Assembly: GCA_025558095.1 (NCBI GenBank)
Contig: JAIVFI010000018.1
Span: forward strand, 434,001-498,000
Direction: 5' to 3'
DNA: 64,000 bases
From: Hyaloraphidium curvatum SAG 235-1
Lineage: Eukaryota > Fungi > Monoblepharomycota
The translations under genes and the position numbers were made by a program. How positions within the stretch are numbered: the stretch's first letter is position 1; the number at the start of each line of letters is the position of its first letter. Below, piece after piece: positions 4,943 to 32,195 of this stretch. A model generated the notes under the pieces. It made no database searches and was not told the DNA's origin. It saw only the letters and a program-made list of their open reading frames with translations.

Positions 4943-6648
4943 ATGAACTTGCAGCCCGCGGACCTTCGCAGCGCGGTTGCCCGCCAAGATGGCGACCTGG
5001 TCGCGGCTTTTTTCGATCCGCTGCCCAGGATTGCGGCGGACCGAACCGGCGCGCGCAGGGGCGCGACGGCTGTCCCCAGCGTGCGTCCCGAATCCCAGGG
5101 CGGCGTCTCGGTCGCCTGAATCGCAGTCGCTTCGTAGACGCAATGGGAAGACGCGGTTCCGGACTACTTCAAAGGAACGATGCGGAATCATTGGCGACTG
5201 GTGAACGACACGGACTTTGCCGACGCTGTCGCCGTCCACGAGGGTATCGCTCGCGTCTACGAGTACGTCTTTTCGGCGGACTGAGGGTACCCATGACGAC
5301 GACTTGCTGTCAGGGCGTTCGTCGGAGGCGTTTTCGGTTCGAACTACTTCGCCGCTTGGCATGTTGCGACGTTGAAGGTCCTTGCGAGGAGCTTGGCCAG
5401 CACCGCCTGGAAGGTAGAAGTCCATCTTGGGCAGCGGCGTCCCTAGATCTCTGATGGCCGCGCAGGCAGATGCTGCTCTCGTAAGGGCACGCCAGCGCCC
5501 ATCCAAGGCCAAGAACCTCAGCCAGTTCTTCCAGAACACGTTTCGGATTATCAACAGTCCGTCGGGGCAGTTATCGCGGCGAGTTGTGCTGCTTTGGATC
5601 AGCAATTTGATGTTGCAGCAGTACCTGAGGGTCGGTGTTGCTTTACTCTGTAGATTGGTGCTTGGGGGCTAACCAGCCTGCCATACCTTCCTCGTAGCTC
5701 GGGGCGCTAAAGCTCTGTGAAGGGCTGATAGCCTCGCTGAAGTCCATGAAGATGGACCTTTCCGAGTACTCGAGCTCGGAACACGTGGCGTTCAGATACT
5801 GGCTCGGCAGGATGCGGGTCATTCAGAACCACTTTCGACCGGTAAGCTGATGGATCCCCCACGACGTTTGGCCTATACTGAAACTATCCAAGGCTGCCGC
5901 GAACCTCGAAGATGCCCTTCGACGATGCCCAAGGGGCCGCATTAGGGCCAGAAGGTAGGAATCGCGCGACCGATCGCTACACCACATAAACGATGCCTGC
6001 GGGACCCCAGGAAGATCTTTTTCTACCTCGCACTCTCGCGGCTGGTTCTCGGTCAGCCACCACCGGCTTCCCTGGTTGCAAAGTACGGCTTTGGCGACCA
6101 CCTCGGCGAGGGTATGGTTGGCGCCTGGAAGCGAGGCAACTTCTCTGCATTCAAGGCCGAGGTCGACCGGGACGCGGGCTTTTGGCTACGAAAAGGCTGC
6201 TACTACGTCGTGACGGAGCGCACAAAGATGGGCATGTTCCGGAACCTCCTGCGGAACGTGTACGTGTGCGGCGCCCATCTCTGTAACCTCCAGCTTACAC
6301 GGCACATCAAACAGCATAGCCATCATTCGCAGCGAAGGAGGAGGCAGTCAGATGATCAGCCTGGCAAGCTGCCTCGCCGCGTGTCATGCCGCCGGTCTCT
6401 CCGACTTCACCGTCGACGACATCGAGGACACCGTGGTCTCGCTGATCGAGCTGGTAAGTGCCGACCCGTGCTCATAGAAAATGCCCGGCCGTGATCAGAA
6501 AGCATTTTTCCGCCAGGGCATGGTCCGCGGGTACCTGCACCACGAGCGCGGCGTCCTCGTAATCAAGTCAGGCGCGCCCCTGGAGGCCGTGCTTCCGGAC
6601 CCGATACGCCCCGGTTTGGCGTCGAGCGAGATGGACATTCCGCTGTAG
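4943..6648 (+). CDS. PCI-domain protein (PCID2/Csn12/Thp1-like), multi-exon
   Basis: LMLQQYLR..GALKL, EHVAFRYWLGR, last exon GMVRGYLHHERGVLVIK resembling the PCI C-terminal KGYISH..VL motif; spliced by eye. Confidence 0.7.
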
Positions 6649-26382: not shown

Positions 26383-26811
26383 CGCGGGAAGGCGATGCGC
26401 TGCCGGGGCCGGGGCCGCCTACGCGGGGCAAGAGAGCGCTCCTACTGGCAGCAAGGCTTCCGATAGGCCCCAGACACACCCGCAGAGGGCGGGGAAGTAT
26501 GGGTACGTCTTCGCTCTCGCCCGCTAGGCAGGCGGTGATCATCGTCCGCGCAGCCCTCCGCAACCCTCTCCCGCTGCCGCACCTCTGGAGCCTCTGTCCG
26601 TTTCACTGGCTCAAATCTACTGGAACATCATCTCTACTGATCGTTGGAACGGCTGGCGGACCGATTCGGGCCTTCACGCCCCCCCAGTTCGCACATCGGG
26701 CGACGCCACCGCGGACGTCCTCGGGACGCTCCCAGCCCCTCTTCCACAACATTGTCGCCCATTCGAAGACCCGTGTTGTGCTTCTCGGTGGATCCGCTGT
26801 ACTAGTGCCCG

Positions 26812-28083
26812 ATGGTCGGTGGCTCGGAGGCTCCGGAAACCCCACGTTGACCCCGTGTCTTCGACCGGAACCGTTCAGACCATCTTCCGACCCTGCATTG
26901 ATATCGACCAAGGACAGGTCACCGTCCGGCAGTACCTCTACGATGCGCCGGGGGCCACGGTGCACCACGGCAAGCCCGTCGACCGCGACATCAAGAACGC
27001 GGGGCACTACGCCGCGCTGTTCAAGTCGCACGACCTAAAGGTACGCCGCACGGCCTGCGCGCACCATGCTGCGCCCGCTGAACCTAGCATTGCGGCCAGC
27101 ACGGGCACGTGTACAAGCACTCGGCCAACTGCGACGAGGCCGCCCTCGAGGCACTGCGAACCTGGCCAAAGGCGTTCCAGCTCGGCGGCAGCATCAACCT
27201 GCAGAACTGCCAGTCGTGGTTGGACGCGGGGGCGTCCAAGGTGATCCTGCGGAACGAGCTGTACCCCGATGGGCACTTTGACGAGGACCTGCTCCGGCGG
27301 ATCTCGGAAAAGGTCGGGACGGAGAACCTGGTCGTTGACGTGACGTGCAGGAGAAAGGGCTACGAGGACTACTGGATCGCGCTCAACAAGTGGACCTCGT
27401 TCGCGAACCAGAAAGTCACGGAGGACTCCCTGACCACCCTCTCCTCGTACTGCTCCGAGCTCATCTTCCACCCCGCGGACGAAAGCGGCCGCCAGACCCG
27501 CGTGGACACGGACTTCATCGAGATGGTCCACAAATGGACGGGCGTCCCCTCGCTCTACGCGGGAGGATGCCGCTTCAAGCAGGACCTCGTGCTGGTCGAG
27601 CGGGCCTCGGACCAGCTCATGGACGTCACCTTCGGGTCCGCGCTGGACGTGTACGGGGGGACGACCGTCACGCTCGCGGAGCTGGTGGCGTGGAACAGGG
27701 ACGTCATGTCGGGGAGCCACGAGAAGAAGAAGGACGCGTACCACCGGCCTTCGCTCTCTGGGGACGAGCTGGAGATGGAGCTGACGAAGTTCAGGGCGGG
27801 CGTGAACTCCACAAAGGGTTGGTCCCGCTGTGCAAGCTGCGAATGGGCCTTTTTGACCCTCCGATCGCCAGGTTCGGGCCTCTTGGCCGCACCGGGGGCC
27901 AGCCTCGCGCACGCCGCGACCGCGCCACCCGACGTCCACCTCACAATGCAGATCCCCACCCCGAACTCTTCCCAGCCGGCGCTGGCGCCGCAAACGCAGG
28001 CGAAGGTCCCCGCGCAGGCGGCACCTGCCGCACCGAAACCCGGCTCCGAGGACCGCAAGAGCGGAGGTTGCTGCAACTGCTGA
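26812..28083 (+). CDS. Divergent HIS6-like (ProFAR isomerase, TIM barrel) protein with a P/A/Q linker and C-terminal GGCCNC
   Basis: ATG|intron 26815-26878|TIFRPCID; FQLGGSINLQNCQSWLDAGASKVI; LVVDVTCRRK; ALNKW; HPADE; YAGG; DVTFGSALDVYGG; introns 27041-27099 and 27818-27871. Confidence 0.85.
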
Positions 28084-28223
28084 TATTCAATCCATCGTGC
28101 CTATTACATTCTAAAGTGTAGACAAAGGAGATGCCCAGATGATGCCACTAGACTGCTCTTGGTCAGACGTTGTTCCAATTCACACACCCCTCCCCGCCCG
28201 TCTCCCCAAGCTCCACGAGCTTG

Positions 28224-29408
28224 CTAGACATTGTTCCAATCCACGTCCCCCTGCCGCCCATCTGCCTCCAGCTCGACGAAACAGAGGTCGCACACCCGCT
28301 GGGGGCCGGAGGCTGTGTACTTCAGACGCAGCTTGGCCTTCTTTGTGCTGTGGTCGTGGCACACGAAACGACCGCAGTTCGGGCACTCGTACCGCGGCCA
28401 CAAGAAATTGAAGACTGCGCCGCAAACGGCGCAAAAGTCGCCGACCGGCCGCGTGGTCCGCATTTCCGTGGTCGTCTTTTCGACCCGCGTCTTCATCCGC
28501 GTGAGCTGTCCCCGGATACCCGTATCGGCGGCCTCGTCATGGGGAGGCTCCTCCTCGACCACGTCCCCCATGTTCTGCACGTCCTGGCCGTGGTCCGCGT
28601 TCCATTTGAGGATCTGGGCCAGGGTCACGCCCGAGCCGCCGTAAACGTCCAGGGCGCTGCCGATCACCAGGTCCAGCTTGGAATCCGAGAGGCGGTCCAC
28701 GAGCTCCAGGTCGGCGAAGTTGCGGGCCCCGCCGGCGTACGTCACGGGCACCGTGGCCCACTGGGCAAGTTCTGCCACGAAGAGCCGTCAGCCGAACACG
28801 AAGGCCACCGATCCGCCCGACAACCCACTGCGAACGAGCTCCTCGTCGATCTGGACCTGCTTGCCGTTCTCGTCCGCGGGATGGACGAGGATCTCGGAGG
28901 CGAAGCTCGAGAGCACCAATATCGAGTCCTCGTTGATCTCCGTCTCGGTGATGGTCTTCCAGGAATTCAAAGCGTAGAACCACTTGGTCTCCCCGTCCTT
29001 GTTGACGCGGCGGCACGAAATGTCCACGACGAGCTTGTCCGGCCCCACCGCGGCGCTGATGGCCCGCAGCCGCGGCTCCGAGAACCGCCCGTCGGGAAAG
29101 AGCCATCCCCTCACGATGACCTTGTCCGCCCCGGCCTCCAACCACCCCTTTGCGGTCTGGTCCGTCACGTCACCCGCCAGCTGGAACCCTCCGGGCCAGT
29201 GCTTGAGGACGCGCCTGGCGACATCGTCGTCTGGGCCGTGCAGGAACACGTGACCGCCCGTCAGGTTGTGCTTCTTGAACAGCTCGGCGTAGAAGAGCGG
29301 GTCCGTTGAACGCGGTTCGGGTTTCTTGGCGCCACCATCGCCAAAGACGGCCTTTCGGACCGCGACTTTGCCGTCAATCACATCGATTGACGGCCTGAAG
29401 ATGGTCAT
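28224..29408 (-). CDS. Divergent HIS6-like TIM barrel fused to a C-terminal FYVE-like zinc finger
   Basis: MTIFRPSID, WLEAGADKVIV, LVVDISCRR, HPADE, YAGGA, DLVIGSALDVYGG; intron 28772-28828; CAVC...F...RYECPNCGRFVCHDHS...RVCDLC. Confidence 0.85.
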
Positions 29409-29442
29409 CCCTGGAAGACGCGGCCGGACGGTGTACGAGAGG

Positions 29443-32195
29443 TCAGGGTCCGGTTGATCGGCGTGGCGCTGACGACATCAGCGTTCCAAGGTCGCCCCTC
29501 GCCCTGCGCAAAAGATCATCCAGCTCGTTCAAGAGACCTTCGGAAGCTTGGCTCCTCCCGATTCGTCCATCGGGTTGCGCCGGAAGCGCGTCGTCGAGGT
29601 CGAGGCTCGTCAGGTGCATCGCCCGATCGCGGTAGAACATCACGTCTCGTTGCGCCTCCACAAGCGCCTGCTGGAACTGCCTGCGATCTCTGATCCTGCT
29701 GGTCAAATGCGATCGCACCTCGCGTAGACGCCTTTGCATCTCCGAGAGGGCCGCTTGAGCCTCGCTCTTGTCCCTCATCGCAGCGTCCAGGCTCGTTCGC
29801 GCGTCCGAGTTGTCTTCCGTAGCCCATTTTAGCCGCTGGTGCAACCCGACAAGGTCCGATTCGAGACCGGCGCAGCCGCTTTGTGCCGACAAAAGCGTCT
29901 GGTCCAGGTCCGCGCTGGCAGCGGCCACGTCGTCCGATCGGGCCCGGAGGTCCGCCTGCAGACCCGCAAGCTCGACAGCGAGGCGGCGATTTTCTTGCTC
30001 GGCCTCTTCATTCGATGTCTCCAGCTTTCGTTTCTCTTCCTTGGCTTGCTCGATATCTCCCTTGACCGCATCCACCGCCTGGCGCAGCGCTCCGCAAGTG
30101 CCCGTGATCGCGGCTACTTCGGTGACGGCGTCCTCCACCCTGCGCCGCGAGGCTTCCAGCTCGGCCGCCTGGGCTTTCTCCTCAACGCGGAGCTTCTCGA
30201 TCCTGTCCAGCTGTTGCTGCCTCTGGGCTCCCAGCTCCTTGGTGCGGCTTCTCAGGGCGTCCTCGGCGGCCCTGGCAGATTTCTCGGCGTCTGCGGCCTT
30301 TTTCTTCCACACGTTCTCGATATCCTCGACGACCCGTTTCCGCGCTTCCGCAGATGCATCCGCCGCCTTGCGTGCGGCGTTGCCCGCCTCGGTGCTGGCC
30401 GTCTTGATTGCCTGCAGATCCCCCTGCAGCGTCCTGACCTCCCTATCGAGCCCCTCCACGGTCGCTTTGAGCGACTTGTTCTGCGACCGGAGCGCTGCCG
30501 CCGCGGGCTGGCCGGCGTCCACCTGCGCCTGCGCGGCCGAGATGGCCTCTTGCAGGGTAAACACCAGGCCCTGGTGGTGCACGAGGTCCCTGTCGCGCAG
30601 CTGCCTGGCGTCCTGGATGTGGTTCTCTGCCGTGGTGCGCGCGAAGCGGTGGCGGTCGGCTGTTTGCTGGGCGGCCTCGTTCTCCTGGGCGATCTTTGGG
30701 GACTCGTACTCGAGCGCCGCGAGCTCCTTTTTTGCCTCGTCGGCGAGCTTCGTCAAGTTCCTGACCCGCTCCTGCAGCGCTTCACGATCGCGGCTGAAAG
30801 CCTGCTGGGCCGACTCGAGCTCCCGGCGGAGATTGGAGGACTCTCGTTCCAACGCCGCGAGCTCCTCGTCCCCGGCGATCTTTGCCGATGACAGCTCGGC
30901 CCTCTTCTTGGAGAGTGCGAGGCACTCCTGCTCGAGGTCCGCGACTTCCTGCTCCAGAGCACCCGTGGCTGCGTCTAGGGATCCGAGCTGCGACCGAAGG
31001 TCCTTTTCCCTGGCATCCGCAGCATCCTTTGCAGCGGCGAGCTGCCTCTTCTTTTCCCGCAAGGCTGCAAGCTCGTGCACCGTTTCTCCCAGCCTCGTAG
31101 TCGCCACACGTGTCGCTTCGTCGGCCCGCCTCTGGAGCCGAGTGTTGTCCGCCCGCAGCTCCGCGAGGTGCTCCTCCGACTGGATCCGCTGCAATACCGC
31201 CTCCTCCAGCTTGGCGGTCACATCCTTCAGGCACACCCTCCTCTGATCCGCCTCGCTTTCCAGGGCTTGGATCTGCGCCTTGGCCTCCCTTGCGTCCCAC
31301 TCGCCCGCGGCCAGGGCCCCGAGCCAGGCCTCCCACGCGTCTCGAACCGCGCCAAAACCGCGGATGAACGCGGCAACCTCGTCCCCGTACCTCTCTCCCG
31401 CATCCCTATACCCCGAAATGCACGCCGCGAGCCGCTCCCTGAGCCCTTGCAATCTCCTCCTCTCCTCCCTCAGCTCCGCCGCCCGCCCCGCCAGCTCCGT
31501 CCTGAGCGCCGAGAGCTCCCCCTCCCTGCGCGCCAGGATCGTGCGGTACAGGCTGCCCCCTTTGGCCGGGTCCGCGGCGCCGCCAATCCCGGGCGCGTGC
31601 AGGCCCTGCATCCGCGCAGCCTCGGCCTTCTCCCGCGCCTCGGAATCGCGCTGGCGCGCAAGCATCCAGGCTTCCTTGTCGTTGGTCTCTTCCGGTGTCA
31701 TGAGGGGCACTTCCTTGGTAGGATCCGCGAGCGGCGGCGAGAAGGATGGCGGAACCGGGGCGTCGAGGTTGGGAGGTTCAAAGTCAGGCGCTGCCAGCGG
31801 TGCCCGGTGGGCGCAGTGGCCGTGCACGGCCAGCAGCGATGCATGGCAGCCGGTACATATGCCATCGGGGGGCGGCTGCGGCCCGCGGTGGGCCAGCAGC
31901 GAGGGGAAGCGGTGGGGCGGGGGCGGCACGAAGGGCGGCACGGAGGTGGGATCGGGCGGCGCCTCGGCCCGCGGGCCGGGCGTCGGGCACGGCGTTGCCG
32001 CCACGGAGCCGCGGTCGAGCGTGAGCAGCACGGCGTCGACACTGCGGGGCCGCTGCGGGCGGCGCTGAATGGGACGGTGGGCGTTCAGTTTCGGATCCGG
32101 GTCGGGGAAGCACGGCCGACCTGCGTAGGCGGCGCAGCAGTCCGCTGGACGGTGCCGGATGCCTGGCGGCCGCGCTTATGAGCGGCAAAGGCCAT
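29443..32195 (-). CDS. Long coiled-coil protein (about 900 aa), family unassigned
   Basis: More than 700 aa of A/E/L/Q/R/K heptad-like sequence; Pro-rich N-terminus with a CTGCH..HGHC cluster; putative first exon from ATG 32195. Confidence 0.7.

Follow-up and report, generated by a model that had tools for sequence, protein, structure and literature searches.

HisA/HIS6 barrels are, to our knowledge, described almost only as biosynthetic enzymes and as models of enzyme evolution. Pseudoenzymes and receptors derived from enzymes are a recurring source of new signalling parts. Proteins anchored to membranes by prenylation or palmitoylation usually carry a flexible linker, a basic patch and terminal cysteines (the Ras/Rho and Yck2 tails), and for Rab tails it is the GTPase domain that is recognised by Rab escort protein (REP) and Rab geranylgeranyltransferase. 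FYVE fingers bind phosphatidylinositol 3-phosphate (PI3P) through the motifs WxxD, R(R/K)HHCR and RVC. Here we analysed a 64,000-nucleotide stretch of the Hyaloraphidium curvatum SAG 235-1 genome (contig JAIVFI010000018.1, positions 434,001 to 498,000, referred to as the window; its contig is C18) and describe two adjacent genes, A and B, that encode HIS6-like (βα)8 barrels with different C-terminal extensions. There is good support for reading them as repurposed HIS6 barrels that gained C-terminal modules. On balance we lean towards the more specific view that they are lineage-specific neofunctionalised HIS6 paralogues, acting as mono-phosphate-binding barrels with localisation modules.

The window DNA is about 65% G+C and eukaryotic, with short GT..AG introns. 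Gene A (KAI9020522.1, NCBI model P0001, 364 aa) occupies 26812-28083 on the plus strand and has introns of 64, 59 and 54 nt, and gene B (KAI9020523.1, P0018, 375 aa) occupies 29408-28224 on the minus strand and has one 57-nt intron. Exons were searched one by one, and all full-length work used the database proteins P0001 and P0018, which are identical to our own exon models. Transcription was assessed with a public H. curvatum RNA run (X1) read as assembled contigs, in which three of the four introns of A and B were seen as GT..AG joints in spliced contigs. A 229-nt piece of A exon 3 with one mismatch was also found in a freshwater poly-A metatranscriptome (X2). Gene models, RNA joints and matches to the eukaryotic HisA profile TIGR02129 (hisA_euk) all agree with an earlier sequence-only reading of this DNA, which had placed two adjacent, convergent HIS6-like genes at 26812-29408, and both are intron-bearing. 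The features of the pair are as follows (L008 and L009 are contigs that carry orthologues of A; AF2, AlphaFold2; pLDDT, its per-residue confidence).

26812-26814, plus strand: exon 1 of A, the ATG only (RNA contig joint 26813->26878, GT..AG; P0001 starts MTIFRPC)
26815-26878, plus strand: intron 1 of A, 64 nt, removed in an X1 RNA contig
26879-27040, plus strand: exon 2 of A, with β1 (CIDID) and a remodelled loop 1 (GQVTVRQYLY) (sequence, P0001, HIS6 alignment)
27041-27099, plus strand: intron 2 of A, 59 nt, GT..AG (sequence, NCBI model P0001 and HIS6 homology, without a direct RNA joint)
27100-27817, plus strand: exon 3 of A, with barrel β2-β8 and a conserved extension (GSHEKKKDAYHRPSLSGDELEMELTKF) (TIGR02129, 201 bits; X1 contig with 0 mismatches)
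27818-27871, plus strand: intron 3 of A, 54 nt, in frame (RNA joint; position kept in L008 and L009)
27872-28083, plus strand: last exon of A, a disordered Pro/Ala-rich linker and then ...SEDRKSGGCCNC and the stop (P0001; pLDDT <50 for residues 296-364)
28057-28083, plus strand: KSGGCCNC codons and stop, a putative lipidation motif (orthologue ends; duplication breakpoint at 28056)
28084-28223, no strand: gap of 140 nt between the stop codons of A and B (X1 contig record starting at 28098)
28829-29408, minus strand: exon 1 of B, barrel β1-β6 (SIDVID, AGD, VIVRG, VVDISC, HPADENG) (TIGR02129, 164 bits; P0018)
28772-28828, minus strand: intron of B, 57 nt (RNA joint 28771/28829, CT..AC on the plus strand)
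28224-28771, minus strand: exon 2 of B, with β7-β8 (YAGG, GSALDVYGG), a long helix, a FYVE-type finger and the stop (profile matches, P0018, AF2)
28266-28436, minus strand: FYVE-type zinc finger of B, P0018 residues ~306-362 (Pfam PF01363, E 2.7e-12)

The 54-nt intron of A takes out 18 in-frame residues (WSRCASCEWAFLTLRSPG) that resemble half a zinc finger, yet are non-coding. A 'CASC' motif considered as a decayed second zinc finger of A was rejected because it lies within this intron, which is spliced out of the RNA.

The relation of A and B to HIS6 was assessed with TIGR02129, for which the equivalog cut-off is 229.3 bits. The full-length proteins scored 233.1 (A), 230.2 (A2, a copy of A) and 238.1 bits (B), passing the cut-off by just 1-9 bits with a match that spans the whole model. 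Exon-wise scores are below the cut-off, and the full-length proteins are marginally above it. A separate canonical HIS6 was found in the same genome on contig C6 (P0172, 274 aa) and scored 348.5 bits; other fungal HIS6 scored 397-412 bits. The sequence-only reading had asked for a search for such an enzyme and had taken A and B for diverged HIS6 paralogues rather than the housekeeping enzyme, and the canonical HIS6 elsewhere, with its far higher score, agrees with this. With a separate HIS6 present, the histidine pathway does not depend on A and B. The AF2 barrel models of A and B have pLDDT >90, and a Foldseek search with A gave yeast His6 as the nearest structure (2agk; target-normalised TM-score 0.94, root-mean-square deviation 1.5 Å), with Medicago HISN3 (9fcf) also matched. 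Since the family passes the cut-off by few bits, automatic pipelines will mis-call it as HIS6. The A orthologue P0002 (L009/L010) is named 'phosphoribosylformimino-5-aminoimidazole carboxamide ribotide isomerase' by JGI.

Remodelling of the pocket was quantified over the 111 alignment columns in which 41 canonical HIS6 show at least 90% conservation. Of these columns, 55 are kept across all A orthologues and 61 are kept in B. Common to all A and B are the β1 Asp (CID/SID), the β5 Asp (VVD.SC), the His and Gly of HxAD..G, YAGG at β7 and GSALD..GG at β8. Both have lost the His after CID, the KQIVGG loop and TNF, the Ile and Leu at the end of β2 are replaced by Tyr/Phe and His, the Ala of HAAD is Pro, and the Glu of DVEG is replaced. 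The third Gly of GGG is Ser/Ala in A and Asp in B (GGS and AGD in this genome), and the Thr-Ser of VTS is Arg-Asn in A and Arg-Gly/Ser in B (LRN and VRG in this genome). The loss of KQIVGG and the changes to GGG and VTS had been noticed from the sequence alone and were evident in both the alignment and the column count. The catalytic-face invariants (KQIVGG, β3 GGG, β4 T-S, DVEG Glu and the His after CID) were replaced in every A and B orthologue. Changes common to A and B include T106R, A185P, L60H and the losses of KQIVGG and of the DVEG Glu; as several replacements are identical in the two (Arg, His, Pro), the pocket appears to have been rebuilt once, before A and B split. The earlier claim that the Asp residues of CID/SID, VVD and HxAD and the C-terminal phosphate site are kept holds for this genome but not for the A family as a whole, since the β6 Asp (that of HxAD), kept in every B, is D, N, G and N across the four A lineages. 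Judged from the alignment, this variation argues against HisA-type catalysis in A.

A and B could be extra isoenzymes for phosphoribosylformimino-5-aminoimidazole carboxamide ribotide (ProFAR) that retain the HIS6 function merely in another location. Scores just above the equivalog cut-off, the enzyme name that JGI gives an orthologue and the Asp residues kept in this genome would fit. We consider this very unlikely, as A and B score 110-180 bits below canonical HIS6 on TIGR02129, lack residues with 100% conservation across the 41 HIS6 (H11, Q17, I18, G20, N33, G86, T106, S107 and E189) and have an altered N-terminal phosphate site, which the bis-phosphate ProFAR requires. The genome also has its canonical copy P0172, and three canonical HIS6 from kin cluster with it.

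In the homologue PriA, the bis-phosphate PRFAR is held by N-terminal (β3/β4) and C-terminal (β6-β8) phosphate sites, and only the C-terminal one is used for the mono-phosphate rCdRP (PMC13717835). By motif position, it is this C-terminal site that A and B retain and the N-terminal one that they have lost, matching the rCdRP case, so that by analogy their ligand is most likely mono-phosphorylated. A and/or B may then be new enzymes, Amadori-type (TrpF/PriA-like) isomerases or their kin, that act on a mono-phosphorylated substrate on the surface of a membrane or organelle. The β1, β5 and β6 Asp are all present in B orthologues along with the C-terminal phosphate site, this site suffices for PriA and TrpF-type chemistry (PMC13717835), and the pocket residues are under strong purifying selection. 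We hold this explanation possible, though on the unlikely side, given the D, N, G, N series at β6 in A orthologues and the TrpF domain already present on contig C19; no pathway neighbours or candidate substrate were seen. The TrpF on C19 also led to rejection of A or B as the substitute for a missing TrpF.

Maximum-likelihood analysis of 36 sequences placed A and B in one clade (100/99) within fungal HIS6, with a shared stem of 0.63 and a further stem of 1.16 for A. The canonical H. curvatum HIS6 grouped with three canonical sequences from kin, which are not necessarily the carriers of A and B. An origin of A and B from the canonical gene within the Hyaloraphidium lineage was neither rejected nor shown by the approximately unbiased test (p = 0.127). 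Both architectures, which the sequence-only reading had proposed to look for in related genomes, recur in relatives: orthologues of A and B occur in at least three other organisms, with identities of 66-74% for A and 60-70% for B, similar to the 69-75% found for canonical HIS6 among the same kin. Intact open reading frames (ORFs) with conserved intron positions were found in at least four organisms. In three of four lineages A and B lie next to each other in convergent orientation. The 96-kb Logan contig L008 carries A, a convergent B and then the same coiled-coil gene as the window, and L011 carries B and a convergent A next to a different upstream neighbour. One metagenome sample has an aspartyl-tRNA synthetase after A (L009/L010) and an Rdx-like gene after B (L013), and A and B are unlinked in that lineage if its contigs share one organism. 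When the last exon of B was searched exhaustively with HMMER against 1.84 billion representatives of 50%-identity clusters, a single cluster matched both barrel end and finger (E 3e-68) and the remaining matches covered one part only, either barrel end or finger. No description of this architecture was found in the literature searched, and with HIS6 plus FYVE confined to one cluster, the suggestion that the architecture had no prior description stands.

In A, the barrel is followed by GSH.KK.DAYHRPSLSGDELE..KF, conserved in all orthologues, with a helix at 276-292. DAYHRPSLSGDELE (window 27730-27790, A residues ~266-285) lies outside the barrel and is invariant or nearly so in the four A orthologues; from its basic-x-S and S-x-x-E patterns it looks like a phospho-regulatory or docking site. 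After an intron at a conserved position comes a Pro/Ala-rich stretch with pLDDT <50 (AF2, residues 296-364). The protein ends in ...SEDRKSGGCCNC in H. curvatum, ...KKKESKCGCL in L008, ...EKKESKCLCC in L009 and ...KEKDSTCICC in L011. A Cys at -4 is thus present in 4/4 orthologues, after a basic patch and with one or two further Cys at -1, -2 or -3, and 3/4 end in CC or CXC. The conserved Cys-rich end makes a lipid anchor plausible. The sequence-only reading had likened this tail to a Rab hypervariable tail with a di-cysteine motif behind a flexible linker. The Cys-rich end kept in all four orthologues and the disordered linker agree with it, but the Rab likeness is limited to the motif: the HIS6 barrel is the sole folded domain, and since A lacks a GTPase domain, modification of the Rab type is unlikely.

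A further copy of A was found by blastn on contig C32. The row for this segment reads:

26634-28056, no strand: duplicated segment, 97.1% identical to a segment of contig C32 (L003 1035-2461; blastn)

The C32 copy (P0171, 395 aa) departs from A right before KSGGCCNC, and its end (...VRCGV) is unrelated and lacks the Cys tail, so that KSGGCCNC and the stop are the only part of A missing from it. Synteny and the tails of the orthologues identify the window copy as ancestral. It is also transcribed, as one X1 contig carries all ten window-type exon 3 alleles; the same de Bruijn contig then changes to the C32 alleles and the C32 tail. The two copies differ by 14 synonymous and 3 non-synonymous coding differences, one of the latter in GSALDVYGG (11 synonymous and 3 non-synonymous were scripted for exons 2 and 3; the frame of exon 4 was set by hand, and its 3 differences are synonymous), so at least one copy of A is under constraint. 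Divergence between the copies is uneven, with 8% in the 5' flank, 11% in intron 1 and none in introns 2 and 3, a pattern that suggests gene conversion over the 3' two-thirds.

These data bear on two other explanations. One is that A is soluble and that its Cys end serves protein docking, metal binding or redox chemistry instead of lipid anchoring. The non-canonical aaX residues, the lack of a GTPase domain for Rab-type modification and the C32 copy, which works or at least persists without the tail, would suit such a role. We nevertheless judge it unlikely, because the Cys is exactly at -4 in 4/4 orthologues and is preceded by a basic patch and a long disordered linker, as in prenylated or palmitoylated anchors. 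The other is that A and B are decaying pseudogenes or annotation artefacts, to which long branches (A stem 1.16) and the lost catalytic-face residues could point. This is contradicted by the intact ORFs and shared intron positions of at least four organisms, orthologues that are 60-74% identical, spliced RNA and the synonymous excess between the copies of A (14 versus 3), and we regard it as extremely improbable.

In B, a long helix (273-317) is followed by a finger that scores 47.1 bits on Pfam FYVE (cut-off 27.8). In an alignment to LM5-1, WDFY3, Vps27 and EEA1, its eight Zn ligands (CxxC...CxxC...CxxH...CxxC), their spacing and RVC were intact, RRHHCR was replaced by PRYECP and WxxD was absent; (P/W/R)RYECP was found in all B orthologues. 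This matches the FYVE-like finger without the R(R/K)HHCR motif that had been recognised from the letters alone. B has thereby lost the final Arg and the His-His pair that contacts PI3P, and is unlikely to bind PI3P. An FYVE finger without the PI3P residues does not by itself establish membrane targeting by B.

Together these data suggest the following model for neofunctionalised, mono-phosphate-binding barrels. A and B would no longer serve histidine synthesis, which the canonical HIS6 carries out. In a single ancestral copy, the N-terminal half of the active site would have changed in loop 1, at the end of β2 and in the phosphate site of β3/β4, gaining Arg, His and Pro; the Asp of β1 and β5 would have been kept, as would the C-terminal phosphate site. 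This ancestor would then have duplicated to give A and B. The most likely ligand of the barrels is a mono-phosphorylated metabolite of ribosyl or ribulosyl type, which B may still isomerise, and A is probably a non-catalytic binder. The C-terminal module would tie each barrel to a cellular place: in A, a conserved helix, a disordered linker of ~65 residues and a basic patch with a Cys cluster that may be S-prenylated and/or S-acylated, and in B, a long helix and the FYVE-type finger without PI3P residues, which probably binds a protein or another lipid.

Co-operation between A and B would be a further step. The sequence-only reading called them a sensor or adaptor pair, but for 'pair' and 'adaptor' we found nothing beyond adjacency, itself apparently broken in one lineage. 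Prediction of a heterodimer of A (1-300) and B returned a complex score of 0.00, which gave no verdict and counts neither for nor against binding. The roles of pair, sensor and adaptor are hypotheses, and a membrane-tethered sensor of a histidine/purine branch-point intermediate, for example a mono-phosphorylated ribosyl-AICAR-like compound, is a speculative and distinctly improbable version of them. If true, membrane traffic or signalling would be linked to nutrient status through the ligand-dependent behaviour of a lipid-anchored pseudoenzyme (A) and its FYVE-like partner (B), a new class of metabolite receptor derived from a biosynthetic TIM barrel.

Several observations weigh against the model of barrels with localisation modules. 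Among the X1 contigs listed, none covers 28057-28097, which includes the CCNC codons (28057-28083), although a coverage gap in contigs cannot show absence from the mRNA. The transcribed C32 copy still looks constrained without the Cys tail, and the aaX of the A tails (CNC, GCL, LCC, ICC) deviates from canonical CaaX. The AF2 model of the FYVE part of B was of low confidence (thin alignment) and was not used. The phosphate sites of PriA were mapped onto HIS6 by motif position and not from a solved complex of A or B. Residual or altered catalysis is possible, as B keeps all three active-site Asp and the scores pass TIGR02129.

The 3' ends of A and B lie close together. The B 3' untranslated region (UTR) extends to at least 28098, 15 nt off the A stop (X1 contig); the 3' UTRs of A and B probably overlap in 28084-28223, with the B transcript reaching 28098, and antisense interference is conceivable. 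A 54-nt direct repeat (28165-28218 and 28226-28279, 70% identity, 61-nt spacing) is also present there, and the last codons of B (...DVDWNNV-stop) recur in its own 3' UTR, where they read ...NWNNV-stop. Upstream of B lies one more gene:

29443-32031, minus strand: 862-aa coiled-coil ORF, the upstream neighbour of B (ORF list; recurs beside B in L008, not in L011)

This protein matched no Pfam family above the cut-off, and a Cys/His-rich motif in its N-terminal part is conserved (DGICTGCHASLLAVHGHCAH, window 31300-31800; DGICTTCHALLCEVANHCGQH, L008 ~5750-5900). Its stop is only 34 nt from the ATG of B (29409-29442), and an in-phase donor (near 29527) and an acceptor (29411) lie around this gap, both unused in the X1 contig. 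B as the 3' part of the coiled-coil gene was not supported, as the X1 contig is unspliced over 28098-30349 and NCBI models B alone; one RNA contig spanning the coiled-coil ORF and B does not prove a single transcript.

A and B look like a natural example of a HIS6 active site of which one half was rebuilt a single time and then maintained by selection in two paralogues with different localisation modules, and they offer a compact test bed for ligand change in a (βα)8 active site. They also caution against automatic annotation, since the HIS6 equivalog cut-off is passed and one orthologue already carries the enzyme's name. The reach of these conclusions is restricted, as the genes have a narrow taxonomic range (Hyaloraphidium and kin) and their roles are deduced from sequence.

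Compared with known systems, A and B are closest to HIS6/HISN3, with which they share the (βα)8 fold, 37-44% identity, the β1 and β5 Asp, YAGG and GSALD..GG. They differ in having lost about half of the near-invariant residues, including KQIVGG, the GGG/VTS phosphate site and the DVEG Glu, in carrying added C-terminal extensions of 100-120 residues and in coexisting with a canonical HIS6. PriA and TrpF are likewise HisA-superfamily barrels and hold a mono-phosphate ligand at the C-terminal site, the only phosphate site conserved in A and B; however, A and B show no particular sequence kinship with them, their descent is from fungal HIS6, and the genome has its own TrpF. The tail of A resembles the lipid anchors of Ras/Rho (polybasic CaaX), Rab (CC/CXC) and Yck2 (CC) in its linker, basic patch, Cys at -4 and extra Cys, but its aaX is atypical, A is neither a GTPase nor a kinase, and the modification is putative. 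B shares with the FYVE proteins EEA1, Vps27, Hrs and WDFY3 the Zn ligands, their spacing, RVC and a Pfam score above the cut-off, and differs from them in lacking WxxD, in the replaced R(R/K)HHCR and in the fusion of its finger to a HIS6 barrel.

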